Origin: Mytilus trossulus
Lineage: Eukaryota
DNA length: 64,000 nt
Assembly (NCBI RefSeq): GCF_036588685.1
Contig: NC_086375.1
Location: 47,492,001 to 47,556,000 of the forward strand
Direction: 5' to 3'
Shown here: positions 7,555 through 37,835 of the stretch, one piece after another
How the letters are laid out: each line of letters starts with the position of its first letter
How positions within the stretch are numbered: the first letter of the stretch is position 1
The notes under the pieces: model-generated
The model's input: only the letters and a program-made list of their open reading frames with translations
The model's database searches: none
What the model was told of the DNA's origin: nothing
Made by a program: the position numbers and the translations under genes

Positions 7555-9009
7555 AAAGACGGATTGAAATACTACTGTCGAATTACAGTGATTGAGATGG
7601 AAAATAAGTAGTTCCGGTGATGTTCAAGGACATGAACTTAGAAAAACAATACGAAATCAGTCATATTTATGAACTTAAAGAGAAACGAATTGATTTAGTG
7701 AAAAGACACAAACAATACTAAGTCTTGTTTATTATTGTAAAGATAATAACAACAATTACCTTAATTTATGTTCTAAAAATAAATTTTATTGCATGAAAAA
7801 TATCTGTTCTCTTTACTTTTTACTGATTGTATATTGAAGGAATGACCTGTAAAGGTATCAAGGTTACTGAGTTACAAGTTTAGACTTAAGTTCAAATAAG
7901 AATGATGTGGTATTGCAAGAACACATTGATAAAATAGAGACATCATCAATACTACTTCTCAGAGAAAAAAAAACCGAAAAACAAACAACGGTCTACATAA
8001 GAATTACAGCGTAAAATATGTAAAAAGTTCAAATTAGTTGTACTGCACACTTTCAACAAAAGTTTTAAGATCATACAATTTTTTTGGCCGACCTATGTCA
8101 ATTGTCTATGTTCATGTTCATGGAAACAGGATGCAAAGGATACACAAGGGACATTCAAAATTTATAAATCAAAGAGAAACTGAAAACACAAAAGCAAAAA
8201 AGAAAATCAAAAACAAAAACCTAAATAAGCTTCATAACACACAGAAAACTAAAGTTTAACATACACGAATCCGTCGAAAAAGGGTTGCTTAGGGTATGTT
8301 TATCCGACTTATATCAATTCTTTATCTGTATTTACAAGTATTCTTTAATTGACCATTGTATACCGTCATCTTACAATACTCTTTTTGAAGTGATATTTCA
8401 GGGATTGTGCTTATTAACAATAACGAAAGTTTTGTTGTGAACAACATGTCCTTAGAAGCGACCAAACTTTGATATGAAGCAAGAGTACCACTCCAAAAAA
8501 GACAAAACAATATTTGGGAAGCTGGAATTATTGAGTTTTTGTATTCAAATGTCACATCATATCAATTACCATACGTTAGTAAAATTTAGATGTTTGCCTC
8601 GTCTTTTCCAAATGGTTATCTTTCAGTTAAAATCTCTTTATATACTGAACAGGAAATGGAAAAAAGAAGTTTCAACCGAAGTTTTCTTAAAAGTCCACGC
8701 ATAACGTTTTACTATTTCTCAGTGTTTACTTGCACTTCTATAACGCACGATAACATAAAGTAAAATCACAAAAGTATTGAACTCAGAGGAAAATTCAAAA
8801 CGGAAAGTCCCTAATCAAATCAACGTTTTCTTTGCAAGTGATATATATTATTTATAGAAAACTGCTGAATGCCTCAATCTTTATATTATTTTAATCAATC
8901 TATTATACAAGCCCAACAACACAACGAAAAAGGATAAATTGTACGACAATTTTTGAGTTTTTTTTTAAGCCTGGCGTTGTTCATTTTCTTTTCGAATTTT
9001 TAGTCTGTA

Positions 9010-9256
9010 CACAGGCAAAATTGCAACGCATGTAAACGCATGTTTACCAGGAATTTACCGTACGTTTCTAAACATGTCAGAAACGCATGTTTGGAGCACC
9101 GTACGTTAAACGCATGTTTGGAGAACGTATTGTTTACATGCGTTTATGGGAAACATGCGTTTGAAAACACATGGTTAACGCATGTTCATGGTAACCGTAT
9201 GTTTGAAAACATATGGTAAACACATGTTCATAAACCGTATGGTAAACGTATGTTTG
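9010..9256 (+). repeat. Left TIR and subterminal repeat array (AAAC[G/A]CATGTTT-like near-palindromes)
   Basis: Repeated aaacgcatgttt / aaacatgcgttt / aaacgtatgttt / aaacacatg units in both orientations directly inside the terminus. Confidence 0.9.
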
Positions 9257-9289
9257 GATGAAGGTTGCTTTACTTCCAGTTCAGATCAG

Positions 9290-9580
9290 ATGCATATTCA
9301 GGTTATGAAATCATGCTAATGAGAAATGAGCTCTAATACTGCTTTGTATTAGACTGACACCCTAACTCACTAATTAACAGTTTGCAGGAAGAATAGTCAC
9401 CCTACTAGGACACATAATTCTGACTAAGGGTGGGTTGATTCAGTCCTTGTTATTACTTCTTAATGCTGCTTGCCTAGCATAGAAATACCAATTTTAAGTC
9501 TTTGCATTGACTCTGCCCCTGTTTGAACCTTAAATAACATCGTGCACTTAATGCAAGCAATTTCAGAATAACTGAGGTGG
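9290..9580 (-). mobile_element. Degenerate SINE-like repeat (resembles molluscan tRNA-derived SINEs)
   Basis: Reverse-complement similarity to 60225-60460 (gcatattcagg, gctttgtat.agactgacac, ggacacataattctgac). SINE identity is from recall only. Confidence 0.5.
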
Positions 9581-10028: not shown

Positions 10029-13000
10029 TTAAACAGTGGCCTGAGGTTCTGAAATAATAAGTAAGATGCAAAGTTAATTATGCATTTTTTTATAACTACC
10101 AATTAATCTTTAATTAAAAACAAGAAAAATAAATTAAGTTGAGGTTAATATTAAGTACATTGATACATAAACATCTATATGTTTCTGAAAGACATTGAAA
10201 ATCAATTATATCAGATTATAAACAGTTAAATTTTCCTTTCTTAACTAACGGGTTTCAGATAAAAGAAACTATAAGTTTTTCAATTTTATTGTATTTAAGG
10301 GTAAAGAAAATCAAAAGATACATCCTCATCCCAGATACATTAATTGTATTTCAATCTTCATAAAGCAGTAATATCGATCCTTGTGGATTGTTAAATTTTT
10401 TTTTATATATTTTTGTGTGTATGACAAAGATTAGTAAGCATTCTTTCATTCTTTAAACAAGAATGTGTCCATATAGTACACTGATGCCCCATTTACATTA
10501 TCATTTTTTTCTGTTTAGTGTACCGTGAAATAAGGATCAAAACCCTAATAAAAAGTAGTCACAGGAAGTAAGTCAGGCTCTGACTACAACAAATGTAGAA
10601 ATCATTTTAACGGTACATGATTCAACTTGATTGTTCCCTTGCATGCAAACATTTAAATATCATTAACACAAGTGTCAGACTGACATACAGTGGTTCAGAA
10701 GGTCATCAGACGGAAGTCAATTAATAAATGTACACTTATCCTCTGTAATTAGAAATTTTTATACACTGTATTCAAATTGCATATATCCTGTTAAATTGAC
10801 AAATGACTAGTAAAAGTCAAAATTACTAGGGAATCACTGCATAGACAAAGAAAGAAATGGAAGGAAGGACACAGAGAATGTAGTCAGACTGACAGACAAG
10901 GTGAATTCTAAATTTATACCACCAATATGTAAATGAGTGGTGATATTATTTGATTGATTCATCTCACTTTTTCTAAGCAATAAATATAAATATACTTTAT
11001 AACAAAATACCTTGTCTTCTCTTGGTTCTTCTTGAGTCCAATTCCTGGAGTGTTTTCCACTTTTCAGGATCATTTATAACCTGGATCTCAACAAAGTAAT
11101 CCTTAAATTTTCCCCAAAAGTCAAGAAAAAATTCCACCTCATCTGACCCGTTTGTGTTTAATTTGTGCTTGTTGAGAAATGACCTCTAAAATAAAAACAA
11201 ATAAAACAGTTATTTGTATTACAATTAACTAACTTAAGAATAATGTACTTTCTTACACGCCTATAATATATTTAAATAACCTATGGAAAACTTGTAAACA
11301 ATTCCAGCTCTTCAACTTTTTAACTGCATTATACCCCTATGTTCTATTTTTATCCATGGCGGCCGTCTTGGTTGGTTGGTCGGGTCACGCCACACATTAT
11401 TTAAACTAAATACCCCAAAGATGATTGTGGCCAAATTTGGATTAATTTGGCTCAGTAGATTCAGAGGAGAAGATTTTTGTAAAAGATATATAAGATTTAC
11501 GAAAAATGTTAAAAATTGACATTAAATGGCAATAACTCCTAAAGGGGTCAACTGACCATTTTGGTCATGTTGACCTATTTGTAAATCTTACTTTGCTGAA
11601 CATTATTACTGTTTACAGTTTATCTCTATCTGTAATAATATTCTAAATAATGACAAAAAACAGCAAAAAATCCCTAAAATTACCTAATTCAGGGGCAGCA
11701 ACTCAACAAAGGGTTGTCCGATTCATCTGAAAATTTCAGGACTGATAGATCTTGACCTGAGAAACAATTTTACCCCCTATCAGATTTGCTCTAAATGCTT
11801 TGGTTTTTGAGTTATAAGCCAAAAACTGCATTTTACCCCTATGTTCTATTTTAAGCCATGGTGGCCATCTTGGTTGGTTTGGTGGGTCACCCCACACATT
11901 TTGTAAACTAAATACACCAATGATGATTGTGGCCAAGTTTGGTTCAATTTGGCCCACTAGTTTCAGAGGAGAAGATTTTGTAAAATTTAACGACAAACGA
12001 CAACAATTGTATTAAAGTTGATTATCAAGGTAGGTTATGTTTGATTTTCTATTCTATTGCATTATTCGCATATGTACTGATTTCAGCAAGTCAACATGGC
12101 GGCTCATTGGTTACGAAATGTCAACTTTGGATTTGACGGTAGCTCACGGGAAAAAACATATAAATCAACATGGTGTCGAGAATGAAACATTTTTTTTTCA
12201 GCGGTTGTTCACGAAATAATCCGTGCAAGCTACGGATCTATTAAAATGATGAGCTTTATCTAACAGGGAGTAAAAAAGAACAGCCATACACACAGATTTA
12301 CCCACCCTCGCTTCAGTTTTTTTAATGATCGTATTTGTCCTATTAGAATCGAAATAACTCATGGAAGCCATAGATTATTGGAAATTTACACATGGCCTGG
12401 GCCGTGATATTCGTTGATTTTATCCCTCGCTAACGCTCAGGATAAAATTTGAATATCACGGCCCGGGCCATGTGTAAATTTCCAATAATCTATGGCTTCC
12501 ATGAATTATTTCTTAATTTACACATGGCCTGGGCCGTGATATTCGTTGATTTTATCCCTCGCTTTCCAGGCCATGTGTAAATTTCCAATAATCTATGGCT
12601 TCCATGAATTATTTCTTAAATAACAGTTTGAATAACAAAAAGTTATAAAGGATGTTATGAGTATTTGGAAATAAAATAAAATCTTGAATTGATACTTTAA
12701 GTGCCAGTCTGCCTACTTAGAATCAGGCAGTGGTCAAAACATGACCAAAAAAAAACACCCAATTTGACATTAATTTCAGTTCATAATATGTAGTTATGCA
12801 CAAAAATAACATCCATTTCCGTTTTCTGTTCTGGTAATAGAAGATACAATTTGGTAGAAATACACAAGAGATTAAAAAATAAGGGGAGATAACTCTGTAA
12901 TTTGCTATAATTCTAACCAATTTTCTAATCGAGTTATTTGATATTACCAGACACATCCAAACGAAAGACTAATAATTTTTAACTCAGGATTATGGTTAGT

Positions 13001-16000
13001 ATTAAAAAGCATGATTAGCTCAATGGGTTTTTTATAATCATGTTTTGATTTTAACCTAAATTGCCTGATTCTTACAAAGACTGGCACTTAAGTCTGAAGA
13101 TCATTAGTTAATTAAGATTATATATTTCTAAAACTATCAAATCATACTTTTTTGGCATCAACATGATCAATATAATATAAAGCAAATGTTACCTAAAATA
13201 TTAACTTACTAATAGCAGGCTCAGTTGCCTTCTTTTGGGGGCCAACACATCAGATGAATTACAGAATGGGCCAAGGAACACTTTACTGAACTCATCTAGT
13301 TCCATGGCCTGTACATCTTTTCCTGATTTTATGTCAAGAGAAATCTAAAATGTATGACTTTAATTTTAGTAATTAGTACCAGTAATTAAGAATAAGACAA
13401 GTGTAACTCAATGTATTTGAAAAATTTAATATGTCCATTAATTTTTAGATAAATGCAAATCAGTCCTATTTAAACTGAGTTTTACTGTGTATATTGCTGT
13501 CACATGTTTCTTTATTTTACATTGTCATTGGCTGGAAGTATAGGGGAGGTTAAGTTCTCACAAAATATGTTTAACCACACAGCATATAATTTGCACCTGT
13601 TATTTGTCAGGAGCCTCTAGCCTTTGTTAGTCTTGTATGTTTCTGAAGCATTAGTGTAATCAATCCCGTTTCAAAATAACTAGACTAAGATCAATCATTC
13701 CTGGTATACAAGCTAGTGTAATCATTCTTGGTTTAAAAAGACTATATATACTGTGAATATTACTCAGAAGAAAACACTATTTTACTTTCTCCTTTTCTAA
13801 GTTAAATCAACAATGCAAGTTTACCAAGAAATAATTGAATAATTAAAACTGGTCTTTGTTTGTGTGATTGACAATGAGACAATTTTCCATCAAAGTCATA
13901 ATGACAGGTTGGGAACAACCTCTTAATTTTATAAATATCCCTTTTAATGAGGGGTCAATATAACTTTATCATGTTTATAATATTTTTTGTTGTAAAAAAC
14001 ACTTTTTAGTACAATAAGGAGGACCACTAAATTTCCAGTTGCAGTAGGGTCTTAGACAATAAAAAATGGCTGGAAACGGAACAATTGTAAAAAATTCCAG
14101 TTTTGGGTTTTGGTGAATAATTTGGAGATGCTTAAACTTAGAATCCTTATCTTTTAGTACAATGTAGCTGCCAGCCATATATTGGTTTTGATGATTTTGG
14201 CAATGTATAGGTATTTCCCCTGTTATATTTCAGAGCACTCTAACTTAGGATTAATTGGTTTCACAGATACATGTATGTACAGTGTGGTGGGGTGCTAATA
14301 GGTTTAAAATCGTTATATACAGGTTTATAAATCTTACTTTTCTCCTTAATTGGTTTCTATAGTCTGTAAATTTGGCTGCAGACCACTGCACCACCATCTT
14401 AAAGGCATGACCTTGGCCTTTGAAACCTTCTTTATCAAGGTGTGATTTTACTTCATTCTAAAATAGATTGACAAGATAATATATTATATGAACGACTTTT
14501 AAATGTAAAAAAACAAAATACACATAATCCAAAACTCAAACCACAACTGTAAAGCATTGAAACTTAGTAAATTTACAAGCAATGACTATATGAGTTAACA
14601 AATGGTCAAGTTTGACATTTAAACCAGTCAAACTACGGTTTAACCTCAAACTAATTGCAACAGAAAATGTTTTAGTACTAATCTATAGCATAATGCCATA
14701 AATTAATAAACACAGAAAAAAAGTCCCATAAAATCTAACTGGAGGAAAACTCAAAATCAGCATTTTTATTTTCCTAGGGAAATTAAACACTGAAAGGGGA
14801 GATAACTCTGCAAAAAAATTTAGTCTTTCTTTTTTGTTCAGTTTTTGGGTTTTTTTTTGAAATTTGTGTAAAGTATGATACTGTGATGGGGTAATAAGTT
14901 AAATATATAATCTTCTGCTCATGAAATGTACAAAACCAAAGTATTATGGGTAGTTTTATTTTTTTTGGGCATGTTACATTGCAAATTTGAAGCTTTGTGT
15001 CCGTTTAAACTAGAGGCTCTCAAGAGCCTGTGTCGCTCACCTTGGTTTATGTGCATTTTAAACAATGTACACAGATAAATTCATAAGAAAATTGTCAGGA
15101 TAGCCTTGTGCAATGTAACCTTATTACACCAATCATTTACTCTACATCTTAGAACTTACTTTGAAAACTATGTCTGAAGTGGTATTCAACCATGGGTTGA
15201 CACTAAACTTCTCCCGAAGGTAAGTATTAAGTTTCTTCTGGAAATAAACAAAATTGATTTCATGATTTGATTAAGAACTTTTTTTATATTTGAAGGGAAC
15301 AAGAGGATAAAAGGTACCAAATAATAAGTATTAATTAACCCTCTCTTACATTAATTTTTTTTTCTCTGCAATCTTGATTCGCATAGGATTCTTGTAATAA
15401 AATGCTGAAAATATGCTTAAAAGTCAGTAATATAAGCAGCATATATGTAACTGTCTTTGGATATCTTTAAAAAAAAATTAGAATGGAAACAGTCTCAGGG
15501 AATGTGTTAGTGTCACTACATTGATGTGAATACCTCACTTGGCCTTTAATTGGGCCAAATAAGCTAAACAAAAATATACATGATATTCTGCAAAAATTAT
15601 TTTAGAACTGCATAAAACAAGAATGTGTCCATAGTACACGGATGTCCCACTTGCACTATCATTTTCTATGTTCAGTAGACCGTGAAATTGGGGTCAAAAC
15701 TTTAATTTTGAATTAAAATTAGAAAGATCATATCATAGGAAACATGTGTACTAAGTTTCAAGTTGATTGGACTTTAACTTCATCAAAAACTACCATGACC
15801 AAAAACTTTAACCTGAACTTCACACTATCATTTTCTATGTTCAGTGGACCATAAAATTGGGGTCAAAACTATTATTTGGCATAAAAATTAGAAAGATCAT
15901 ATCATGGGGAACATGTGTACTAAGTTTCAAGTTGATTGGACTTCAACTTCTTTAAAAACTACCTTGACCAAAAACTTTAACCTGAAGCGAAAGGACGAAC

Positions 16001-18125
16001 GGACGCACAGACGGACGAACCGAGGCACAGACCAGAAAACATAATGCCCCTCTACTATCATAGGTGGGGCATAAAAATACCTTGAATGAGCATTCCTCCA
16101 TTAGGAAGCTCTGTCCTTTCTGCTCTGACTGCCTCTTCAGGTACAGCACATCAGCTGATAGTTCTTGCAGAACCTTTTCCATTTTGACTAGCTTGTTCAC
16201 TTAAAAAAATTGTATTATGATAAATATTCTTAGCCAATTTAATTAATTTTTCTCATTACCTTTTGTTCCAATTGTAAAAATCAAGTAAAATTCTCAACAC
16301 TTTTTCAGTTATAATCATTCTTCATTAAACTTCATAGTTTTTCTCTTTAGACTATGATTCAGTCAACCTAAAAAAAATTATTCACATCTATATGTCCTTG
16401 ATTGACCTAAAACAGGCTAAAATTGTATAACAATAAATGATATGTCACTTAGAGTGAAAGTAATTTTATTGAGAAAATAATTGAAATTCCTCAAGTCCAA
16501 TTATTTTAATGGCAGGCTTCTATAAGAAATTTGGTTATTTGCTTAAAGTGTAATAAAACTAAATGAATAAAAACGCTATCTATCTGTCTCATCTAGTTTC
16601 GAGTGATTTAAACGACCCAGAGAAAATACCCAATTTTACTATCCATACTAAGAAAAAAATTCTTAGTATGGATAGTAAAATTGGGTATTTTCTCTGGCTC
16701 GTTTAAATCACTCGAAACTAGGTGAGACACGCACAGAAGTGATAGATATGTATTATAAATATAGAAAATTGAATATTTTTAATAAAAAAAAAAAAAAAAA
16801 TCTGTATCTTAGACCCAAGCGCATGTGATTAGAGAACCCATTATATATCAAGAACACATGTTCCTTGATTATAAGTTAATGGTTAAATTCTTTAACTTTT
16901 ATATAAACAGTAATCAAATGATATGTACCAATATGTAAAACCAACATTTTTTAAAGTTTTGCAGTCGTATAAAAACCATTGAACTGTTACAATTAATAAT
17001 TGAAACCTAGTTAGATTACTTTATTTATAGAGTATGCACTTACAAATTTCTTTGGATCCAGCACTAGCCCCTGCTGGGTTTTCTGGCGGTGCAAACAAAT
17101 CCTGGGAATGGTCTTGCTCATCTCCAGGTACAGCAACAGGCACATTTTCCTGTGAATCCTGTATAAAAAAAGTATACATGATAAGTTGATGGGATACTTT
17201 TAAAAATGTTAAAGGCACTAGTTCCTGTAAAAATGTACGCTATTGTTCAGAATTAAAAGCCCCCCCCCCCCCCCCCCACAAAGTGTTATAAGAGGGGTTG
17301 CGACATTGACTAACCTAAAAAGGGGATGGGTGTCCAGACCAGTCATACTTCAGTGATTCCCTATGTAATTAAACATTTTTTTTTAACATAAGAGGGATGC
17401 CCCTCCCCTGAAACCACCTTTGGCCCTTTGGATACTACGAAAAATGCTTTTAATTATGAGCATTTAATTGAACTGAAAGATGCTTTTATTAATGGGCATT
17501 AAATTGAACTAAAGGATGCAGGGTCATTCTATATGATGTGTTCATATTAATTCACACCTTTTGTTTAAACAGTTCAATCTGCTGTGCAATTTTTTTTTTA
17601 ATTCAGATGTGAATTTTAACAGAATAATATAAAATTAATATGATGTAATACATAAAAAGAAATCTCTTTTAAAAATTAAGATTTTATATGATTAAAGAAT
17701 TTTAATATCCAATCAAAGGTACATCCTACAATTAAAATTGTAAAAATGTAAGGTTTTCTGAAATAAATATTAATGTGTTAAGACAGGAGTCCATCAGGAC
17801 AAGTTAGATGATGGTAGTAATACTAATATATATATAGTGAAGAAGAAAAAAATCTTTGTAGATTTAAAGAAGATATTTATAATAATGTCTATATATCATG
17901 TTTATTAAACTTATCAAACTTTTTTCATCTGTGAATTATCTGACCAGTGTTAACTGGTATAGATCATAAAATATTTCAATATGTATCAGGAATCTACCAA
18001 ATTCTTAAAATGCAGCAAAATTCATTTCTTTTTGTACTCTAAAGCCGGCAATTTAAGGCGAACTGAAAAGTATCATTATTCCTTTACCCATATTATGATA
18101 ATATACCTACCTCTAACGCACTCAT
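10029..18125 (-). CDS. Transposon accessory protein (ORF2, TnpA-like role inferred), 7-8 exons, ~256-258 aa
   Basis: Exons 18111-18125 (MSALE), 17044-17158, 16081-16199, 15160-15237, 14338-14457, 13210-13344, then 10997-11185 (or 11011-11185 plus final exon 10029-10048). All GT-AG, phase-compatible and open. Low-complexity N-terminus, coiled-coil-like ILNKLVKMEKVLQELSADVLYLKRQ, then KFTDYRNQLRRKI and DFWGKF. First and last exons are least certain. Confidence 0.78.
11320..12000 (+). mobile_element. Non-autonomous repeat with internal ~500-bp-spaced direct repeat (Helentron/HINE-like, tentative)
   Basis: cccctatgttctattttt..ccatgg.ggcc.tcttggttggtt..tcagaggagaagatttt occurs at ~11330-11480 and ~11830-11985. 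A related inverted fragment lies at 61860-62140. Confidence 0.6.
12351..12620. repeat. Long hairpin (12351-12512) with adjacent partial duplication
   Basis: Arms catggaagccatagattattggaaatttacacatggcc / ggccatgtgtaaatttccaataatctatggcttccatg around a cgctaacgctc centre; partly repeated at 12516-12619. Confidence 0.8.
15615..16078 (+). mobile_element. HINE/DINE-1/pearl-like non-autonomous element
   Basis: Starts aacaagaatgtgtccatagtacac, has two ~178-bp tandem core repeats, a GACG-type microsatellite and a terminal atgcccc...ggggcat hairpin. Partial copies at ~10456-10550, 24285-24530, 27350-27440 and 32280-32545 (minus). Confidence 0.7.
16585..16729. repeat. Near-perfect inverted repeat, 70-bp arms and 5-nt loop
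   Basis: tgtctcatctagtttcgagtg...ctaagaa aaaaa ttcttag...cactcgaaactaggtgagaca, about 2 mismatches. Confidence 0.9.
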
Positions 18126-18570
18126 GCTCTTTTCCTTCAGTTTTTGTATGTTTGACTGATTTCACTGTGATGCGTATTCAAATAAATTTTGACAGAACTG
18201 TGTAACTTTGTAATAGTCGTCTGCTAAATGACGTCACATCGGAAGCGTCGGTAAGAGCGCAACAAAAGCTGAAGCGGAAACGTAAACGTGATGTTTCTAA
18301 AAATCTAAAGTCAATCGAAAGTATATAATTGTTGTGCAGTTATTTTAACGAAATAAAATAAATAAATATAGTAAACGATTTAGATACGTACAATGTTCTT
18401 ATTGTTGAAATAAAGAGGGATACTTCCGTGTAACCGTTTCCCGTTTTTAGTTTGACCCGTATGACAATCGGAATATTTTTGGGCTTGACTCAACTGAATT
18501 CAACAACCCTAGAGAGCTACCGAGTGAATCATTGTTTACTGCGTAACTATCAGTTGATTACTATGTCAGT
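18126..18570. promoter_or_regulatory. Putative bidirectional promoter of the transposon genes
   Basis: 445 bp between divergent start codons, locally CpG-richer. Perfect CRE TGACGTCA at 18229-18236. ETS-like CGGAAG at 18240-18245 and CTTCCG at ~18423. Confidence 0.6.
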
Positions 18571-21500
18571 ATGTACATCTGCGACTGCTGTAATTTTAAA
18601 ACAACGCGACTGTTTAATTATCAGAGACACCTGAGCAGAGCTACACACGAGCGGCAAGTGTTTTTAACTCAAGAGAACAATTACTCTTTCTCACCTGGAT
18701 CTATTGAACCCCCTTCGGATTTCGTGTCGACAGCCTTCTCCGGCAGTGAAGAAGACATATTTATACAAGTAAACCATGAAACACTAGATGAAAATGAAAA
18801 CAGAACTAGCGAGACAGATCAATCTGACAATGATTTCCAGGAAAACCACCAAACAGCAGATGAAAATGAAAACTGTAATACTAATAGTAATAACGAGACA
18901 GGCCCATCTGACAAAGCCCCAACATGGTATCCTTTTTTATCCAAAGCTGAAATGTTGCTGTACATCTTTATGAATTCTACAACACATCCAGTTGTAAGTT
19001 TGTCATTTTATGATTTTATTTAATATAAGAGGTTTAAAATGGTATTGGGTCTGTTCGCCCTAATTACAAAATGTACATGTACAATGTACATGTTCGCCCT
19101 GGGACCTGTTTACCCTCAGTTTGTTCGCCCATAGGCATGGAGTCAGTTCATCCTACAAAATGTACTTAAAAATATTTTAAAATATTCAGGGCAATGCAGT
19201 TTAAAAAAATTATTTAGATTATTATTTCTAGGGTATATTCTTGAAATTTATTGAAATTAACATTATGTGACTAGACAACAATTAGAAAAAAATAAAAATC
19301 AGGGAGAATGGACCCTCACAGTGCGAACAAGTATCAGGGCCAATATAGGTACAAGGGCGGACACGAAACAGGTCGAACAGTTTAAATTATGTTGTTGAAA
19401 AAATAATTGATCTTACTGTAAAGAGTTTGGAATTTAAATTTGTTCTCATACATATGTATCAATTAATTAAATGGATAAAATACAGGTAAGACATCAATAC
19501 AGTGGAATAAGGTTTTAAAGGACTTTGTTAATTATAAGTTGACATTTATTGTCAGACTACATTGTACATTTAATGTAAACAACCATTTTGTAAACATATG
19601 CAAAATTTGGATTTGACAAAAAATCAAGAATCAGAATACATATTTCCAACATGTCAAATTATTCTTTTTTAAGTATATAGGACAGGATCTTTATGTTTCA
19701 TATTTCTATTAAAAAAAAGAATACATCTTTTCATTATCAGTCAGTTCATACAGATTGGTAAAGTCTTTGATTAAAAAGCTGAAGGTTAAAAAATTTCTTC
19801 ACTAAATGTTATAATTTCCAGGTTTAATTCACATTTTATGACATTAAATTATAAAACTAAAGCATTTAGAGTAAAATCTGACATGGGATAATAATGCTCA
19901 TTTAATGTTATTATAGATAAAGAGAAATTGTGAACAGCATAAGATTTCAGCATAGTCAGATCTAATATATTAGTGAATATGACCATAATTGTCAATTGAC
20001 TCCTTAAGGAGTTATTTTCCTTCAATGACAATATAGCACATTGTGTTCAATCATATTTGCTTTATTTTACAAGGTTCCAAAATATTTGACATAAATTTAT
20101 ATAATAAGCATTGAAATTAATTAAACTGTAATTTCATTTTTCAGAGTGATGAAATAGTGAAGTATATCATTTTTATGATGGGAGAACTGAATGTGACAGA
20201 TGTCCCAACTCTGCAGAGTTTGAAAAATAAAAATATTGGAGACTTCAGCTGGAAAGATTTTGTGACAAAAGTGAGGGTTCTATTAATTATGATACATTGT
20301 ACATGATGAAAATTGGGTTATGTATTCAGAAAAAAAAAGTGAATTAAGAGCTCTTTGAAAGGAAGCATTAAATATAGAAAGAAAAGAAAAAGTTGCAACT
20401 ATAAAAACCATTTATCAAATCAATCCATGTGTTCGTAGATAGTAGATGTTGTTGTGTCCTGTTAAATTGTTATACGATGATGACTGATGTTCCCATATTT
20501 TGACTATTTTATTGATTGTGACTGTTTATTTAACGCATCATGTAAATGTAACGGAATTTGATGAGACTGTTATTAAAGTGAGAGGGTTAGCGCTATAGAA
20601 CCAGGTTTAATCCACCATTTTCTACATTTGAAAATGCCTGTACCAAGTCAGGTATATGACAGTTCTTGTCCATTCGTTTTTGATGCGTTTTGTTTTTTGA
20701 TTTTGCCATGTGATTATGGACTTTCCAAATTGATTTTCCTCTAAGTTCAGTATTTTTGTGATTTTACTTTTTATCATCCTCTATGTTAGTTTTGTTTGAA
20801 ATCTATACAGTATAAGAAAACAACAGTAAAATTAAGGACAACTATGATGTGTGATAAAAATGAACTGGAGCGTTTTTAATGACTAAAGCCCTTTGTTAAC
20901 CTTTATTAAAGTCTCAGTGTCAAGCAGTCTACATAAAGCTTGATTATACTAACATCATTATACTGCAATTTTGTTATACATGAAAGTCATTCATAACTTT
21001 TTTTACTCTGAAATTTGATTTTATACATTTTATACTTTACAATTTTTTGTAGTCTACAAGTGAAGATGGCATTCCTGTTTGGTCGATGAAACCATCACAG
21101 GTATTAAGGCTCAATATGGCACATCCTAAGATCTCAAAGTCACTCAAAAGGTATACGCAATCAATTCTTAGATAACTCTTTTATAAAGATTGATCTTGAT
21201 CACAGAAATTAACAACTACTGACAGCCTTCAACTATGAGCAATGTCAATACAGCATAGTTCATTATAAAAGGCCCAACAATTACAAATTTATGCGAAACA
21301 ATTCAAAGTAGAAAACTAGTGGCCTAATTTATTATAATGTACAAATAAAAGAATGAATAACAAGTATGTAACACAGCAACAAACGACAACCAAGGCTTCT
21401 GACTTGGGACAGACACATGCATACAAAATGTGGCGTGGTTAAACATGTTACCACATCTTTGTGTCACACACAGTCATGTAACAATTTTTTAGCTAGTTAA

Positions 21501-24500: not shown

Positions 24501-27500
24501 CGTTTTCTATCATAGGTGGGGCATAACAATACCTAATCACGGAAAAATATCATTAACCAATGAACCATGAAAATGAAATCAAAGTCAGACTATTACTGGC
24601 ACACAAACATACAAGTCGTACAATCATTCCATACACCAAATATAATTGACTGAATGTAAAGTTTCCAAAAAATAGACCAAAACTGAACTTTGACAACTGA
24701 AGACCAAAAATAAACTTAGTGACAACTGAACCATTGAATTGAGGTTAAAGTCATGAAAACTATCGTTTGCACATGTACACTTACCAATCATTCCATACAA
24801 GTGATCCATGAAATGAGGTCAAGGTCAAACGAAAAGTATCTGACAGGCATTAGTACAGTAGAAGGTATTCACATACCTTATATAAAAATAAGTGGCTGAT
24901 CCAGGGGTAGATTGGAACCACTATCCCTTTTTTTATTCAATCAATAGGGACATATGTTTGAAACCACCCCTTAATACCTGGATTTGGACCCCCTGTTCTT
25001 GAAAATAGATCAGCCCCTGGAAATCATATTACATGGCAAAAAGCTCAATTTATTTTGACTTTAAAATACTTTACTTTATTTTATGTTTTAAGGCTGATGC
25101 AGATCACTTTATGTCGCTGTGCCAGAAAAGAACACCAGCAGATACTAAGCTCCAGTTAAACAGACTTAGTTTGAGATCTCTTGAAAAGGATAAAAAGAAA
25201 TTTAGGAAGAAAAAAGGTGTGAAAGAGCATGACAATGTTATGTGGGATGTATTGGATCCACACAGGTAAATATAAATCAATCAATATCTATCTATAAATT
25301 TGACCCTAACCTGAAAGTAATTGCAACAAAAGTTTTTTAAGTTTTAATCTTTAGCATTATACCCCAAATATACACAGAAAAAAGTCCCACAGAATCTGAC
25401 TTGAGGAAGACTAAAAAAATTACCATTTAAAAATCCTAAGGAGATTTGCATTGAAAAGGGAGATAACTCTTGCAAAAAAGGCAGAAATATCAATAAAAAT
25501 TGATACAAAATTACAACTTTACCGCTTCTATTCACCAGAATGTAATGCTTCTGATATTTTATCGGTCTTTAGAGTAAAACGAACAACTCTAAAGGTGTTT
25601 TCATATCTTTTATCAAGCTAAAATCTAGATTTCCTAATTCATTAGTTGACCAATTTTTGAATTTTTCAACATGTCAAGGTAAAGAATCTCTAATTTAATA
25701 AAAAGAGTTCAGCATGTATTCTTCTTTTTGTGGTTTAAAGCTTCTTTAGATAAGTAAGATGCTGAAAAAATATAATACACAGATATAAACAATATCAAAT
25801 TTTCACATTATTTTTCAAAAATGGTCACAAAGCTTCAAATTTGCAATTTCTTTAATGAAAAATGCACTCAAGAAATAAAACTACCCATAACACTACAGTT
25901 TTGTACAGTTCATGAGCAGAAGATAATATAATTTAGTCAAAAACAAACTTATAACCCCATCAAAGTATTATACTTTACATAAATTTCAAGAAAATATACC
26001 TAAAAAGACAAAAAAAAACTCATTTTTGCGGAGTTATGGGACTTTTTTCTGTGTATATTAAGGGCATAATGCTATAGATTAGAACTGAAACATTTCCTGT
26101 TGCAATTAGTTTGAGGTTAAATCTTAGTTTGGGTGGACTAATAAGAAAATGTGGTGTAAGTGTCAATTATTCAACTCCCCAGCCAAGAGATAATGTGGTT
26201 AAAATAAACATTTATAGGTTACAGTACAATTTTAAACACAGCGCCTTGGCTCATCCCAAACAGCAAGCTATATTAGGGACCCAAAATGACTAGTGTGAAA
26301 CAATTCAAATTGGATAACCAACTGTCTAATTTGTAAACAAAACAAGAAAATGACAGTTGATATAAATTCAGCTTGTTCAAACATTTCATAGGCAGTTCCA
26401 GGGGGGGGGGTGGAGCTGGGCCCCTCCTTTTGTGGGAAAAACTTGGTTGAAGCATGGCTGGAGCAGGTCCCCCCTTAGGTCAGTCAGTGCCCCCATCCCC
26501 CCTTAGGAAAAGTTGTGGATCCGCCACTGCATTTTTACAGACACCAACCTTCACACTAACATTACAACATAAAAAGAAACACTTTTCAGAATTAATTGAA
26601 AAAGGTTTAACACCTTAAATTGACATGTTTATTTTAAACAAAAAATTATAAGAAGTGACATAATGGAATATTTTAAATATAGAAAACATTTAGTTTAACA
26701 TGTATACTAGCTACCCTATATAATGTAATAGGATACGACCGAACAGTGTCATGGGAATATATTAGCTTTAATTCATGCCTTTCTTTTTTTAGAGATATTC
26801 CAGTTGGTCTTCTCCACTTATTACCTTTAGGATTAATTAAACATTTAATCCAATACATATTTAACAACATTGGAAAAAATGTTAAGACCAAGCTTATGCA
26901 TCATTTGCTGTCTATTTACCCTGGAGCACAATTTCATGAGTTTGATAAACATTTAGGAAGTAGACAAGGGAAGGATTTTAAAGAATATGTGAGTAAATTT
27001 ATTTATATTTTAATTTGTAAACTAGAATGAGCATGAAATATCCATCAAATAACCAAAAACTATTAAATGGGAGAACCACTTGCAGAAGTATGGTATATGT
27101 GAGTGATTGCAAAGGTTATGCTTGTCTCCCACGTGGTGATAGGGGACATAGAAATACCAGACATTAGTCTGTTAGACCTGTTAACACTTACTTGTATATA
27201 ACTTGTACAAGTTCAAAAATGGTCGCAACCAACCTTTTTAAAGAGTTATGCTTCTTGGAAATATTAAGTCCTCTCATGGGTAAATTTTTTGTGTGAAAAT
27301 GAGTGCTGATTGACTTATTTATGGAGAGTTATGCCCTAGGTCTATAATAGCCTTTGACTTTAACCTGAAGCGGGACAGATGGAAAAACAAATGGACACAC
27401 AGATCAGGAAACCTTATGCCCATAAATTGGGCATAAAAAGTAACTAATACAACAATTTCTACATACAGTGTTTTAATAATAAGCATATGAATATTTAATA

Positions 27501-30500
27501 GTACATGTATAAAGAATGAACAGTATTGATTTTGCTTATTTATTAAAGCCAATCCACTATAAACAAATATTTATAAACTAAATGATATTTTTTTTTAAAA
27601 TATTTTAGAAATTTCCCATAGTCTTAAAATGCATAGTATTTCTTTTCAGTTGCAAATAGCACCAATTAATATGTTGTATGCTGGTGTTCCAAGAAGATAT
27701 ATTAAGATGGTGACTAGTTTGGCTCTGGTATGTAAGACATAATTAAATTAGTAACTTATAAACATATTTCCATTACAATTTTAATTGGAAGTGATTGCAG
27801 TGTCCTCTTTTATCAGATGCACATTTATGATTTAAAAAGTGGTACTGTTTTTATAAAGGTTAATTACTTTCCCTGCCTTAAACAATGTGTTTAATTTTTG
27901 TTTTGCCAATTAAAACCATACACCAGGAAAACCAGTAAATCAAGATTAATAATATTATATCATTGGAGTTTGTAAATTGATTGTAACCAGATATATCATG
28001 TTAAGGAGGGGTATTTTTAAAAAATACCAGTCTAGAGAATGTTAAATTTTGCGAGCCGTAAGGCGAGGGAAATTCATTCTCAAGACTAGTAATTTTCGCA
28101 AATGCCCCTCAAGAACATGCTATATCTGTTTAATTACATCGAATGTTAATGTTAAAAAATGCATTGATGATTGTGACGTTACAACCGTCAAGTCCGATAG
28201 AGTATTTTTTGTCTAATTACACCTTATATAAGAATGCCAGCTTTTGATTGGCTGAAAGCCAGTGTATTTTTCGCATATTCTAACATTTTTTCCTCATTTC
28301 AAACGAATCTGACTGTTTTTCACCACTGCAGGTGAATATGCTTCAAATACCATGGTATTTGCCATTTTGGATATTCCTTTTTTACCCTAACGAGCATCTT
28401 CCCGCAAATTTTTTTCGGATACGACTTTACATAAAGACAGCGCGAACGTGCATTAGTACATGTATTTTCCCTCGGTATATTTTATGATTGTACTTGTCAT
28501 CAAATACATATTTCCTTTTCCTAGTACAGAGAGTTTAAATTAAAATGTATTCGGTGTAATTAATCAGATATATCATGTTATGGAGGGGTTATATAATTTG
28601 CAAAAAATACAAGTCTTAATGGGACAAAATTTCCCTTGCCTAGCGCCTTGGGAAATTTAAGTCCCTCAACTTGTATTTTTCGCAAATACCCCTCCATAAC
28701 ATGATATATCTGTTCAAAATACCACAGCAGAGAGGGTAAAAAAGGCATATACTTTTTGCAAATACCCCAGTTGCCTTTAAAATGAACAATTTCCATTTGG
28801 AAACAGTAAACTAGTGAAAAATTCACTGGCTATTAGCCAATCAAAACCCAGGATGCTTCTTATAAAAGAAATATAACATGGCTTGTTAGTATAAGCAGAA
28901 CAGTTACTGTTGAATTTCAAATGATCAGAATTATCTATTCTGTTTTTTTAATTTGTTTTATTTTTATTGTTAAAGATCCAGAAGAAATTGAATGAAACCT
29001 CATTTTGTTCAGAAGATTTGGACAAAATAAGAGAGGATATTAGAGAATATCAGCAACTTATATACCAGTATGCCCCAGAACTAACCAGAAAAGTAAAAGC
29101 ACATCTTTTGCTACACTTGGTAAGATGATCATTAGATATTGTTACTATTGCTTTTAATACTCTTTTTTGGTTTTGATAACGTTTTAAATGTTACAAAATA
29201 TTTCAAGGGTGCTCCGCGTCACCAGGTAATTTAAATTTGCGACAGTAAAACTACTGATGGACGTCCTTAAAGCTTCAAATACAATACAATTATCTCTTAA
29301 CTGACATAGCAATTTTTCAAATACAGTATTGATACTCTGATTGTAATGCATCTCAAAAAGAAATAATACGATAAAACTTTATAAAATGTCTTTTTTTTTA
29401 CCAATTGAAAAAATCCTGTGAAACTTCATGAATGATTGTATAGTTGTAATCGAACATTTGTTGATTCAATCATTTCAAAATGGAGGGTCCCTCTTTAGTA
29501 ACAACTGGTCGATGGTGAATTTGATGTCAATTTTTAGCCAATTTGAATAATGTTACATACATATTGCATTAGAAACTTGTACAACCCTGGTGACTAGAAA
29601 TGGAAGAAAAACAAAAATACCATAACCTATTTAAGACACAGATATATTAAACACAACATTGGAAGCTTAAGAGTAAAAGAGTGAGCAACATAATCTCAAT
29701 AAAGAACAAAGGTGGTCTCAAACTAGAAAAAGAAAACAAGTCATCTTCAAAATGTATCATTTGTCATGATCTGTCATGGTATCCACTATATAAAAAAAGG
29801 ACGTGGAAACCGTTTAAGCATAGCTTATTGAAACTTGATTGTGAAAATTAGTTTTTATTTTTGAAAATTTTTCAGGTAGATGATATTGAAAGACATGGCC
29901 CTCCAAGTGGTTTCCTTGAGGATGGTTTTGAAAAAAAACATGGAAATATAAGAAACCTTATATTCCAACAGAACCAAAAGGCCAGGAGTCGAGACACTGC
30001 CTTCAAGTTTGCACAAAACTTTTTGTGTTTCCATGTGATTACAGGAGGATATTTTGAAAGGAGCAGAATATGGTATGTTGCATTGTTAAACTATATGAAT
30101 TGAGGTTCATTTAACACTGACATTTCAAAAAAATGTATATATACTTTAGTAAACAATAAGATGTGTTATGATTACCAATAAGACAAGCCTCAAAGTATGT
30201 TTAAAGTAGTAAATATAAGCAAGTATAGGTGTCAGTTCAGCCTTTGCGGGATTCAAATCCTTCAACTTATTTGGAACATTGATTTTACAGGACAATAAAA
30301 GAAACAAAAACATTTAAAACTCTTTTAATATACTCAGTTTAACAGTCCGACATGAAGCATGTAACATATGTTTTGAAGAAACTTGGCTGACAGGGACAGG
30401 GCCATTCGTGTCACTTTGACACATCTAGTTTATAATTTTCAGGACACAAGCATCTGCCAAAGTACTTGAATCTGGAGAAAAAGGTCCTATTCTGAAATTT

Positions 30501-33024
30501 CTTGGTATAACACAAGAAAAAACCAAAATACCAGGAAGAATTTCGCTTCTGAAAAGAGATGGAAATGGACATCCAATCATTGAGAATGAAAAGCAAGATG
30601 CGTTGTTACGCATGTCCCTCCAAATTGCATCAATAGTTGATAACAATGATTACACAATTGAAAGAGGGACTGGTGTATGTGCTCAGAATGGTGATCTAAT
30701 ACATGCTGGTGACTGGGTGAAATACAGAAATATAAATAGTGATGTAAGTGAAATAATTAAAATATGTATTTACATTTAGTTACACAGTGTCTAATTAAAC
30801 AGTTATCTTAGTTAGTTTTTCAGGGATATAATGAAACTCTTTTTAATATGCTGTTAACATATATATATTGAAATTTAAAATAAATATGAATAATTATATA
30901 TATATAAAATTACAAAATGCTAAGAAAAATGTTCTTTTATTGACTAATAAGTATATAGAGAAAACTAAACATAGTTTGGAAACGTTGTGGGACAAGCATG
31001 TTGTTATTCAGCTATTCTGTGATGTTGATATCCCCTTACCCCTGTAAAGATTTAATAATATTATCAGATTATTACATGGCATTTTTCATATCGCATGTAT
31101 TATCAGCCCCAGGTTCAATATCAGCCCAAGAGCCGCATTGCTCGAGGGCTGACATTGACCGAGGGCTGATAATATAGGCAATATGAAAAATGACATGCTA
31201 TGATCTTTTTATCATATGCTTCAACAGAAGAGAAAAATAACAGATTTATATATTGATTCTTTTACGTGGTTCCCGAAAAGAAGTTGAAAGAGTAAAAAGA
31301 AATGTTTCTATCATATGCCTCACCAGAGAAAAAAACCCCACACATTTTATATGGACGAATCGACAAAAAAATAATTCAACAATATACACAATGAACATTG
31401 TTTGGAAAAGACAATTTTTTTAAGTAACTTTCTAAATTATGTTTCAGAAAAACTTAAAAAATGCATTTATTTAATATATTTTTTTTTAAATTTTATTTTA
31501 TTACTTTACACAAAGAAGTATATCAACCTCAGACTTCGTCCTCAGTCAATATATTCTTATATTATTAATTCTTTTATTTTAACAAATTTGATTTGTTTAG
31601 GAATAGTCACATGTTAAACTATATTTTTGAAGTTAGAGAAAAACGGCTGATAGCAAAAAGCATATTGCACAGAGCATATTGCACGGTTATTTTTAGAATA
31701 TCTTAAACCTGATTTACTTTGTGACGTCATGTAATGAATTTCAGGATATCGTTAAACGTTTTGAAACAAATTATATCTGTGATCGATTATTTGTTGAAAA
31801 ATATCTTTAATTAGATTTCAAATACATGTCAAACAAACAAAAAAAGTAAATTAAATAACAACTTATATGTCGTTATTGTCAAGGAGACAATATGATATCT
31901 ATAAAATTCAAACAAAATCAAATGATGATTTTGATACAAATATGCATAACATGGTCTGAAATCAATAATATAACAAATATAGCCTTTGTATGAGGTCAAT
32001 ACAGGATATATCGACCCAAAGAAGTATATCGAACTCGGACTTCGTCCTCAGTCAATATACTTCTTTCAGGTCAATATATCCTTGTATCGACCTCATACAG
32101 AGGCTATATTTGTATAGTATCGACCTCATACAAAGGTTATATTTGTATATTATTACATTGTCAATATTTATATGGGTTCATATACTCTATCAAGGTATCC
32201 TTTTAATTGTTTGATGTTCCAGAATACTTTGCTACAGTTATGCTTATGATGATGGCACATAATATAGGATTACACACATTTTTATGCCCTATCTACACCT
32301 ATGATAGTAGAGGGGCATTATTTGTTCTGGTCTGTGCGTCTGTTTGTCTGTCTGTCCCGATTCAGCTTACTTATTTGTCAAGGTATTTTTTTTATGAAGT
32401 TGAGTCCAATTAACTTGAAACTTGCACATGTTCCTTATGATATGATCTGTCTAATTTTAAAGCCAAATCAGATATTTTTATCCCAATTTCACGGTCCATT
32501 GAACAAAGAAAATGATAGTGAGAGTGGGGCATCAAGTCGTAAGGACTACGTAAGTAGTTCAGGCAGAATGGTTTAATGGTTTATGAAAGTGTAAACTAAG
32601 GATAGTAAATCTAATGAAACAATCACATTCAAATATTTTTTGGTATGCAAATTAAATTAGTATTATAATTAGATTATATAAATGTATTTTTCAGATCTGC
32701 TATGGTATTTTCAAAGAAGCTATGAAGATCTGTCCTAAAAGAGGATCTGTGAAATTAATAGCTGTGGTATTGAAATGTACCATTACTGGTGATAAGGTTG
32801 TGCAGTGTCCTGTTTTGAGACTTTCAAATCTTAAAGAATATGTGCCTACCCTCCAAATATTATCTAACAGTCAAGTTATACACAGCTGTCATGAAGCTAG
32901 ATGTAAAGTTATCGAGGGATTGATCACAGAAAAAATTGAACAGGAAAACATTGTCAGAAGAACAGTCACCTTTAACCATAAACTTCAGTGTCAAACCTAT
33001 TTATTGAATGTATTTAAATTTTAA
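18571..33024 (+). CDS. CACTA/EnSpm-like (CMC) DDE transposase, 13 exons, 840 aa, N-terminal C2H2-type zinc finger
   Basis: Exons 18571-18993, 20145-20270, 21053-21150, 21668-21861, 22459-22573, 23813-23960, 25093-25265, 26793-26988, 27650-27727, 28976-29119, 29876-30072, 30443-30743, 32695-33024. All introns are GT-AG and phase-compatible; 2523 nt with no internal stop. Motifs: CDCC..H..H, FLDDTATHKSRRW, GIETFDA, IVADF, YCPKC, DPHRDIPVGLLHLLPLG, GKDFK, KAHLLLHL..I.RHGP, GFEKKH, SRD.A, IHSC...C, YLLN. Confidence 0.88.
20425..20773 (-). repeat. Abundant interspersed repeat (aaaagtaaaatcacaaaaatactgaact family)
   Basis: In-window copies at ~8757-8822, 43097-43310, 56900-56995 and 59080-59370. 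Confidence 0.7.
22777..22995. mobile_element. 219-bp MITE with TGTCA...TGACA ends and 4-bp GACA TSD (Ginger-like)
   Basis: Interrupts the host repeat gattgccaatgaGACAactatccacaaa. GACA is duplicated at 22773-22776 and 22996-22999. Internal GGAATA repeats in both orientations. Confidence 0.75.
23320..23612. mobile_element. Head-to-head foldback of a tRNA-derived SINE
   Basis: Inverted arms ~100 bp across 23391-23612. Pol III B-box GGGTTCGAATCC on the minus strand at 23494-23505. Confidence 0.65.
25300..26125. mobile_element. MITE with ~90-bp imperfect terminal inverted repeats
   Basis: taacctgaaagtaattgcaaca...acacagaaaaaagtccca at the left and its reverse complement at 26037-26120. Deleted relative at ~14636-15000. 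Confidence 0.6.
27985..28725. mobile_element. Non-autonomous element with related hairpins at both ends (unclassified)
   Basis: Hairpins cagatatatcatgtta.ggaggggt...cccctc..aacatg.tatatctg at ~27986-28130 and ~28565-28712. Confidence 0.6.
31065..32150. repeat. Palindromic repeat remnants with hairpins at ~31072-31200 and ~31965-32150
   Basis: tattatcagccc...gggctgataata and acaaatatagcctttgtatgaggtc...gacctcatacagaggctatatttgt arms. Confidence 0.6.
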
Positions 33025-36000: not shown

Positions 36001-36419
36001 TTCGAACTGCCTAATAATATTTATATTACAAGTTACATTAATAATACATTATTTTCACAATAAGAAATGACCAACATATTTATATACCAAACCCTAACTG
36101 GTACTCTAAAGAGTTTACCAATGCTTGAGTTGAGTTTTGTAGATTTCGGGTTGTTATCTCTTGGACACATTCCACATTTCCATTCTTTATTCTAATAATA
36201 CGTACCAGTATACAAATAATTTAATATCCTATTATATGTTTTTTTGTCTTGTGTTGAGGGAGCCTAAGCATTGGCATTTATATCGTTTCCATAAAAGATT
36301 ATTGCATTATTTTATGCATTTTTTATAATATCAAAATAACACATAGGCAAGACGTAGGTATATATTATTCATTTACATGTCAATCAAAAAGTTTAAACAT
36401 TATTACATAAGTCAGTTTT

Positions 36420-36845
36420 CAAAACATGAAAAACATATGTTTTTGAACATAAATATCTTTATTTTGTGTTACTCAAAACATACGTTAACGGCCTGTTTTC
36501 AAACATACGTTAACCAGATGTTACTCAAAACATGCGTTTACCAGGTGTTTTTCCAAACATATGTAAACTACATGTTTTCAAACACATGTTTACCAGGTGT
36601 TTCTTAAAACATATGGTAAACATATGGTCAAACGTATGTTTCTCATATGTTTTGTAAACATGTGTTTCACATGCGTTCATCAACGCATGTTTACTACATG
36701 TTTTTCAAACATATGGGAAACGCATGGTTTCAAACACATGTTTACCACCTGTTACTCAAAACAGATGGTAAACATATGGTGAAACGCATGTTTACCATAC
36801 GTTTTCAAAAACACCTGGTAAACATGCGTTGCAATTTTGCCTGTG
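36420..36845 (-). repeat. Right subterminal repeat array and TIR
   Basis: Same motif family as the left end over ~430 bp, ending ...acatgcgttgcaattttgcctgtg. Confidence 0.9.
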
Positions 36846-37835
36846 TATGTTATTTTGGTATCTTTCGAATTTGCTTTATTGTTCCCGCTTAATTTTTTTC
36901 ACGTTGTTTTTTTACTTTGATCTGAAGAAATAATTGTTTGTATTTTGTTTTTCTATTGTTGTATTTTGTTAACCATACTGTTTTGAATGTTCCCTTCGTA
37001 CCCTTTGCCTAGCTCTTTTTATTCCGAATACATACACATTTTACATAAACATATTACTCTATTTTAAAAACAATTAAGCTGCCGTGTGAACATTATGAAA
37101 AAGTCGATCTTGACTAGGAATTGATAAACCATTGTGACCACAAAGTTAACCAAAAACTCAACAACCTTTATTTGAATCGGTAATCTTTTGTGGTTTTTTG
37201 TTTGATTTTTTTTCTTGTTTATGAAGTATTCATGTTGTTATCTAATGATTTGTTTTTATTTGCGTTAACATCAAAGTGTGTTGCCCATTAACATTGATAT
37301 TTTGTTTCAATATGAATACTTATCATTGATTTTTATCAAAAAATTAACTGTCTGTAACAACCTTTTCGTGTCATTCCTTCAGTGTATTGTGAATACATAG
37401 CTAACAACATAAACATTTTTCATATAAGATAATTTATTTTCATAATATAAATCACTGTTATCATTTTACAATAATTAACAATAATAACTTTTGTCTTTTC
37501 ACCATTTAAGTTTTTTCTTTAAATTCATCATCTTGACTAATTTCATATTGTTTCTCAAAGAACTATTTCGTTTCTCTTTAAGTTCATACTGATGATTGAT
37601 TTCACATTGTTTTTGTAAGTTCGTGTCCTTGCCCATCACCGGCACTACTTATTCTCCATCTGAAATACTGTAACTCGACAGGAATATTTCAATCCATCGT
37701 AGGAATGTACACCAGTGGTACATTCCATCTCCAACTGCTTCTATCTCAAAGTCTTTTGACAGCAAAAGGTTTTGCTATTCTTAACACAAGATGTGTTTAG
37801 TAAATGTTTATCTCCGGGCAGAGATAAGTTCAAGT

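Follow-up and report, generated by a model that had tools for sequence, protein, structure and literature searches.

The window analysed here, the whole 64-kb stretch at C3:47492001-47556000 of the 1.3-Gb assembly of the mussel Mytilus trossulus, contains two divergent, intron-rich genes enclosed by perfect 24-bp terminal inverted repeats (TIRs). The enclosed segment, 9010-36845 (9008-36847 with its TA flanks; 27.8 kb), is likely to be an autonomous DNA transposon of the CMC/CMCT clade that is complete and structurally intact, the clade name being used for the CACTA-Mirage-Chapaev-Transib-Plavaka-ESTA group. The two ends, with their target site duplications (TSDs), are arranged as follows.

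9008-9009, no strand: left TSD, TA, from flank reading of the family ends
9010-9033, plus strand: left TIR, 24 bp, starting CACAGG; exact match
9034-9280, plus strand: left subterminal array with AAACGCATGT-type motifs in both orientations, opening with the 10-bp repeat that marks all left ends
36420-36821, minus strand: right subterminal array with 5 of the 12 AACGCATGT 9-mers, 93-98% identical to the right ends of non-coding relatives
36822-36845, minus strand: right TIR, 24 bp; exact match
36846-36847, no strand: right TSD, TA, from flank reading

Within the window the 24-mer occurred solely at 9010-9033 (plus strand) and 36822-36845 (minus strand), and 100 shuffles of the window produced no match. 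Perfect 24-bp TIRs starting CACAG, which an earlier reading of the sequence alone had described, are therefore exact at both ends with none expected by chance. The left end consists of TA, CACAGGCAAAATTGCAACGCATGT, a 10-bp repeat of AAACGCATGT and then TTACCAGG; at the right end, next to the TA flank, the exact reverse complement of the 24-mer is followed directly by TTACCAGG, so that the termini read CACAGG...CCTGTG. The sequence-only reading had taken the 10 bp for a duplication in this left end after which the match resumes with TTACCAGG. It is present and the match does resume, but all 18 left-type ends in the genome have it, and it is thus a feature of the family rather than private to this copy.

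The 9-mer AACGCATGT, counted on either strand, occurred 12 times in the window, seven in the left array and five in the right, always no farther than ~270 bp from the left end or ~430 bp from the right; the subterminal arrays noted earlier are thus confined to the two ends. Positions 25-300 from the left were 85-96% identical across the 18 left ends, and the outermost ~300 bp of the left side and ~400 bp of the right side were 85-98% conserved between the window copy and its non-coding relatives, a pattern that fits cis sequences used by a shared transposase. The TA reported on both flanks was found at 9008-9009 and 36846-36847, and TA abutted 25 of the 30 family ends inspected. One pair (C1:7894629/7905761) abuts TC on both sides, showing that the dinucleotide is a 2-bp target duplication and that TA lies outside the element. 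The 5-bp flanks of the window element differ (CTGTA and TATGT). Just inside the left array, 9255-9517 is a ~68% match to a ~287-bp dispersed repeat found at no fewer than 17 loci genome-wide.

The plus-strand gene (18571-33024) encodes the transposase, and its 13 exons and upstream stretch are listed below.

18200-18570, no strand: CpG-containing stretch upstream of the start codon, with TGACGTCA and several CG (sequence only)
18571-18993, plus strand: exon 1, start codon, C2H2-type zinc finger, acidic linker (homologue mapping, splice chain)
20145-20270, plus strand: exon 2, 88% identity to P0001 (VDI67471.1); GT-AG, in frame
21053-21150, plus strand: exon 3, matched by homologues P0008 and P0025
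21668-21861, plus strand: exon 4, first catalytic D (FLDD, 21789-21800) (mapping, alignment, splice chain)
22459-22573, plus strand: exon 5 (mapping, splice chain)
23795-23960, plus strand: exon 6, second catalytic D (VADFN, 23883-23897) and C-x2-C (CPKC, 23946-23957); acceptor alternatively 23812; weak Tnp2 match
25126-25265, plus strand: exon 7; P0001 (VDI67471.1) suggests an earlier start, 25093
26793-26988, plus strand: exon 8, invariant LH..LG.K and SRQGKD blocks (mapping, alignment, splice chain)
27650-27727, plus strand: exon 9 (mapping, splice chain)
28982-29119, plus strand: exon 10, H-x3-H (HLLLH, 29102-29116) (mapping, alignment, splice chain)
29876-30072, plus strand: exon 11, catalytic E (FEKKH, 29927-29941) (mapping, alignment, splice chain)
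30443-30743, plus strand: exon 12, where the RAG1-like core ends and the BAH-like domain starts; 75% identity to P0001 (VDI67471.1) residues 531-643
32695-33024, plus strand: exon 13, BAH-like C-terminal domain and stop codon; 90% identity to P0001 (VDI67471.1) residues 631-739

The splice-site search gave 12 GT-AG introns and a joined frame of 2502 nt, or 833 codons, without stops, in agreement with the 12 introns and open spliced frame proposed earlier; with two ambiguous acceptors the predicted protein is 827-840 aa long. The joined transposase was checked by exon phase, and database searches were run exon by exon. When the exon at 29852-30100 was compared with 1.84 billion representative proteins, 53 relatives were found, some of them full-length annotated proteins. 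Their hosts include the bivalves Mytilus galloprovincialis, M. edulis, M. coruscus, Saccostrea, Crassostrea, Argopecten and Pecten, the annelid Owenia, the nemertean Lineus and the chytrid Phlyctochytrium. Their entries are either unnamed or labelled 'uncharacterized', with VDI67471.1 recorded as 'hypothetical' and one UniProt entry as 'C2H2-type domain-containing protein', which is how the sequence-only reading had expected such genes to be annotated.

VDI67471.1 (P0001, from M. galloprovincialis) is ~90% identical to the window exons. The value is 33% for exon 1 and 75-96% for exon 2 and exons 5-13; exons 3-4 are missing from its gene model. Mapping the homologues back onto the window yielded 13 colinear exon blocks. 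In an alignment of nine homologues, the second D, C-x2-C, H-x3-H and the E of FEK were invariant, and the first catalytic D (DD/D motif) was conserved in seven, the models of P0001 and P0008 being those without that region. The motifs D, D, C-x2-C, H-x3-H and E are kept across bivalve, annelid and chytrid homologues, and all are present in the window exons. Among Pfam families, Plavaka (PF18759) was matched by homologue P0028 at 32 bits against a curated cut-off of 26.3, the other homologues giving weak Plavaka or Tnp2 matches below threshold; no Tc1/mariner family was matched by either the window exons or the homologues.

Open transposase exons with 80-94% amino-acid identity were also found at three sister loci (C8:36.70 Mb, C13:11.14 Mb and C3:4.02 Mb), and a search for the window's ends near these loci returned no match at ~68% identity or above. 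Decayed transposase relatives elsewhere in the genome have stops within single exons. At C5:23562838-23565077, ~25 head-to-tail units recur about every ~89 bp and look like a satellite array derived from a transposase exon fragment: they match exon 4 of the transposase at residues 51-86, and every one of them contains a stop.

The second gene, on the minus strand, is referred to here as the helper.

10029-10048, minus strand: last exon, six codons and stop; a strong acceptor completes a phase-1 codon; too short for homology
11011-11185, minus strand: exon C, 49-50% amino-acid identity to the sisters; at least 10 more diverged copies; GT-AG, in frame
13210-13344, minus strand: exon B, 51-56% amino-acid identity to two sister loci; GT-AG, in frame
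14338-14457, minus strand: exon A, 48-51% amino-acid identity to the sisters and 90% to a decayed copy at C5:50.968 Mb; GT-AG, in frame
17041-18125, minus strand: putative 5′ exons (~18111-18125 and 17041-17153), from reading of the sequence

Exons A, B and C and the six-codon terminal exon join in frame through GT-AG introns. An earlier proposal of a minus-strand gene with 6-7 introns therefore holds for the four 3′ exons, the upstream ones being putative: an in-frame connection from them to exon A requires one or more additional exons, and the reading frame at 17024-17239 had no relatives elsewhere in the genome. The CpG-containing stretch at 18200-18570 may be a promoter shared by both genes. 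A run of ~19 C lies between them at 17262-17280.

Helper exons A-C were 48-56% identical in the sister loci at C3:4.008 Mb and C8:36.685 Mb, where the introns could not be aligned. Because each sister helper is located 11-13 kb upstream of its sister transposase and in divergent orientation, the head-to-head layout of the two genes is conserved. The transposase (80-94% identity in sister loci) evolves far more slowly than the helper (~50%). A Pfam search of the helper exons at E values up to 10 returned nothing, the ESM Atlas returned unnamed clusters only, and the search for homologous proteins returned one 100-aa fragment, as expected from its length window. On C5, a distance of 22 kb separates a decayed helper exon A (50968190-50968587, 81-90% identity, one stop) from a decayed exon 4 of the transposase (50990863-50991081, 70%, with stops), and the two keep the same relative orientation; this pair is probably a dead relative of the two-gene element.

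Fold comparisons were made with AlphaFold models of two homologues, Pecten P0064 and M. galloprovincialis P0001. The Pecten model, with a predicted local distance difference test score (pLDDT) of 70-90 in the core, matched RAG1 with a Z score of 17.4 and a root-mean-square deviation (rmsd) of 3.7 Å over 341 residues, followed by the amphioxus RAG1-like protein (BbRAGL, Z 15.9), P-element transposase (12.8) and HzTransib (11.4). The M. galloprovincialis model gave Z 16.8 for RAG1, 15.3 for the amphioxus RAG1-like protein and 13.1 for HzTransib. As read from these modelled homologues, the transposase core is a RAG1/Transib-type DDE fold. A sequence-profile search of the PDB with the transposase alignment did not find RAG1 and returned N-terminal C2H2 fingers only (E 0.016, weak), indicating that the kinship to RAG1 is visible at the fold level only.

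In both models, BAH domains were the only non-transposase matches listed at Z 7.5 or higher, and they cover the β-rich C-terminal 130-180 residues, corresponding to exons 12-13 (30443-33021) in the window. The matches included ZMET2 (Z 8.4 and 9.7) and BAH1 of DNMT1 (Z 8.5, rmsd 2.8 Å), together with ORC1, BAHCC1, TNRC18, SHL, EBS, AIPP3 and Rsc2. These Z values are at the caution line of the structure-comparison tool, and a true BAH fold in the C-terminal domain is, on the models, reasonably probable. It would be unusual for a RAG1-fold transposase to carry a chromatin-reader-like domain of its own.

The 24-mer was searched across the assembly, as the sequence-only reading had proposed. There were 31 exact and eight near-exact copies (1-2 mismatches), and none of the reversed control. 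The ends form ~14 inward-facing pairs, 8-29 kb apart, on 11 contigs; a small number of ends are unpaired, and one further pair spans 145 bp. No two sites have the same flanks, and of the ~14 pairs nearly all have TA and one has TC on both sides, confirming paired TIRs at unrelated sites with 2-bp TSDs. Every end is either of the left type, with the 10-bp repeat, or of the right type.

Ten copies were compared with the window element by BLAST, and they aligned to it only over ~1.2 kb at the left (76-83%) and ~420 bp at the right (93-94%), apart from unrelated dispersed repeats. The non-coding copies constitute one 8-11-kb family with 87-96% mutual identity, whose 13-29-kb members are inflated by nested insertions (a long terminal repeat (LTR) retrotransposon and satellites). 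A tblastn search with all 53 homologues found no transposase in the other elements with these ends, nor did those elements have long open reading frames of their own; the long frames there belong to the nested LTR retrotransposon and satellites. Inside its left arm the non-coding family keeps a decayed relic of helper exon C, with stops. In the genome search, transposase exons at 100% identity were confined to the window, and the window element is the sole coding copy with these ends in the assembly.

The sequence-only reading had also set out a contrary scenario, in which the TIRs bound an unrelated miniature inverted-repeat transposable element (MITE) and the two genes are single-copy. The ends do bound other elements, but the scenario does not describe what was found, because those relatives keep the helper relic and both genes recur as diverged sister copies on other chromosomes.

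Three family members deserve separate mention. A 23.2-kb 'pair' at C12:54510359-54533760 is bounded on either side by a left-type end, with a right-type end midway (~12.4-12.8 kb), and from these end types it is two non-coding copies in inverted orientation and not one element. The 28.9-kb relative on C5 is enlarged by a nested insertion resembling an LTR retrotransposon, whose gag-like (511 aa) and pol-like (834 aa) frames are long and open. At C10:1970031-1970175, two near-exact 24-bp ends face each other 145 bp apart and could be a miniature derivative or an internal-deletion remnant.

The CMCT transposase signature is D-D-[C(2)C]-[H(3-4)H]-E, and the criteria for the clade include 5′-CA..TG-3′ termini and a TSD of 2-5 bp (PMC12730594). 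The DDE triad, C-x2-C, H-x3-H, CA..TG termini and a 2-bp TSD, which are all the features of that definition, are present in the window. The element is within the CMC/CMCT group and outside EnSpm/CACTA in the strict sense, because its TSD is 2 bp and not 3 bp and its terminal pentamer is CACAG and not CACTA. The earlier identification of the element as a real and complete CMC-group transposon with two genes and potential autonomy is thus supported by signature, ends and TSD. Its CACTA/EnSpm-like label fails in the strict sense, given the CACAG ends, the TA duplication and Plavaka as the Pfam family nearest to its homologues, with Tnp2 weaker. The termini reported for Plavaka are absent from the element, and the TA duplication recalls Mirage and ESTA.

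The 27.8-kb length that had led to the name 'giant' is correct, but the bulk is introns with nested repeats and not cargo: the introns carry at least 10 nested repeats, which account for much of the length. Palindromic (MITE-like) and dispersed repeats lie in the introns of both genes at 12351-12615, 16585-16729, 23410-23595, 27980-28858 and 11322-12030, and further ones at the paired positions 15618-16077 / 32296-32533 and 14619-14980 / 25854-26141. Beyond the element, 37158-37345 in the right flank is part of a ~3-kb tandem unit (also at 43617, 46514, 49473 and 52439), and the element therefore lies at the edge of a gene array.

Several observations weigh against a complete, autonomous element. 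All Pfam matches of the window's own exons were below threshold, including Tnp2 (PF02992) in exon 6 with 13.8 bits where 28.6 are needed, and the fold was read from models of homologues and not of the window protein. Overall, the left end shares only 76-83% identity with the left ends of the relatives. A BLAST search with the flanks and the joined flanks found no junction-spanning copy of an empty site, only dispersed repeats 190 bp or more away. The helper belongs to a family without known match, with putative 5′ exons and a function predicted by analogy only. Because the coding copy is single, its age and activity are not readable from copy divergence; the non-coding copies, which differ from one another by 4-13%, show no very recent burst.

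The single coding copy, the mutual divergence of the non-coding relatives and introns full of nested repeats would all suit a once-autonomous element that is now a fossil, looking intact but unexpressed or immobile through silencing or inactivating missense changes. We consider this possible but the less likely reading, because the open frame of ~833 codons over 13 exons argues against long neutral decay: no splice site and no catalytic or zinc motif has been lost, the two TIRs match perfectly and the TSD is undamaged, whereas decayed relatives elsewhere show stops within single exons. It is improbable that two ends of the non-coding family merely chance to flank an unrelated, host or domesticated, gene pair. 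Neither gene is intact in the other ~14 pairs with these ends, a two-element composite does exist at C12, and TA on both flanks, as at the family's other sites, cannot prove a single insertion event. Against this, the non-coding family retains the decayed helper exon C at the same relative position in its left arm, CA..TG ends with a 2-bp TSD predict exactly the clade to which the enclosed transposase belongs, the ends are one left-type and one right-type in correct orientation, and what other chromosomes hold of the gene pair is diverged sister copies and not one conserved host locus. The TA duplication could also recall a Tc1/mariner/pogo-type element, which is very improbable: the fold and motif results already contradict that identity, with a RAG1/Transib fold carrying C-x2-C and H-x3-H insertions and homologues that match Plavaka and Tnp2 in Pfam, and the ends begin CAC, have long subterminal arrays and include one TC/TC duplication.

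If the element is a complete autonomous transposon, the transposase would recognise the 24-bp CACAGG ends, possibly through its C2H2 finger, together with the AAACGCATGT subterminal arrays, and might cut at the CAC termini as RAG1 and Transib do. By analogy with TnpA of En/Spm, the helper may act at the subterminal AAACGCATGT repeats or regulate the reaction. The single coding copy would supply both proteins in trans and so mobilise the non-coding family. We tentatively propose a lophotrochozoan lineage of RAG1-fold transposases with its own BAH-type reader and a dedicated, fast-evolving helper, whose only coding copy with these ends here may be mobile and may drive a large non-coding family. 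If that were true, it would be a natural two-protein, chromatin-reading relative of the RAG ancestor, with the reader on the transposase instead of the partner.

The window provides a reference copy whose ends, TSD, cis repeats and two genes are all delimited, for a transposase family annotated only as uncharacterised proteins in public bivalve, annelid, nemertean and chytrid records, and adds molluscs to the TA-targeting branch of the CMC group with the RAG1/Transib fold. The transposase, helper and 24-bp ends are a candidate endogenous cut-and-paste system for animals without transposon tools. The BAH-like domain and the separate helper offer starting points for asking how chromatin reading and partner proteins come to be recruited by RAG-like transposases; if confirmed, these two features and the spread across lophotrochozoans and a chytrid may distinguish the family.

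Compared with the described members of the CMCT clade (EnSpm/CACTA, Mirage, Chapaev, Transib, Plavaka, ESTA, as well as Lanisha; PMC12730594), the mussel element has the defining features of the clade and differs in its bivalve host (with relatives in bivalves, an annelid, a nemertean and a chytrid), 13-exon gene, BAH-like C-terminus and separate helper gene. It resembles En/Spm of maize and other plants in its CAC termini, subterminal arrays, multi-intron transposase, second protein, large size and many non-autonomous derivatives. In contrast to En/Spm, its TSD is 2 bp (TA) rather than 3 bp, its pentamer CACAG rather than CACTA, and its second protein is the product of a separate divergent gene, where En/Spm splices one transcript alternatively; the helper has no detectable similarity to any Pfam family. 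The TA or 2-bp duplication and the EnSpm-like, RAG1-similar transposase are shared with ESTA (EnSpm-like, TA TSDs, rust fungi) and Mirage (2-bp TSD, nematodes), a likeness at the level of their descriptions, and with fungal and nematode hosts instead of a mussel. Plavaka (PF18759), of basidiomycete fungi, was the best Pfam match of the homologues, one of them above the cut-off, and some Plavaka families make 2-bp TSDs (PMC12730594). Plavaka termini are TGT..ACA (PlavakaA) or CATCA..TGATG (PlavakaB) (PMC12730594), unlike the CACAG..CTGTG of the mussel element, and the profile was matched over the C-terminal 40% only.

The likeness to RAG1, the RAG1-like protein of ProtoRAG and Transib lies in the modelled core fold, over ~340-395 residues (Z 15-17 for RAG1 and BbRAGL, 11-13 for HzTransib). 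As in the RAG1 system, the ends start with CAC, like the heptamer of the recombination signal sequence, and as in ProtoRAG the element has two genes. Unlike Transib and ProtoRAG, it has a TSD of 2 bp rather than 5 bp, and sequence identity to the RAG1 group is only 9-14%. The mussel partner, of ~150-260 aa, shows no sign of likeness to the Kelch-propeller protein RAG2, its exons matching no Pfam family, and the chromatin-reader-like (BAH-like) domain predicted here would sit on the transposase itself, whereas in the RAG system the PHD finger is on RAG2.

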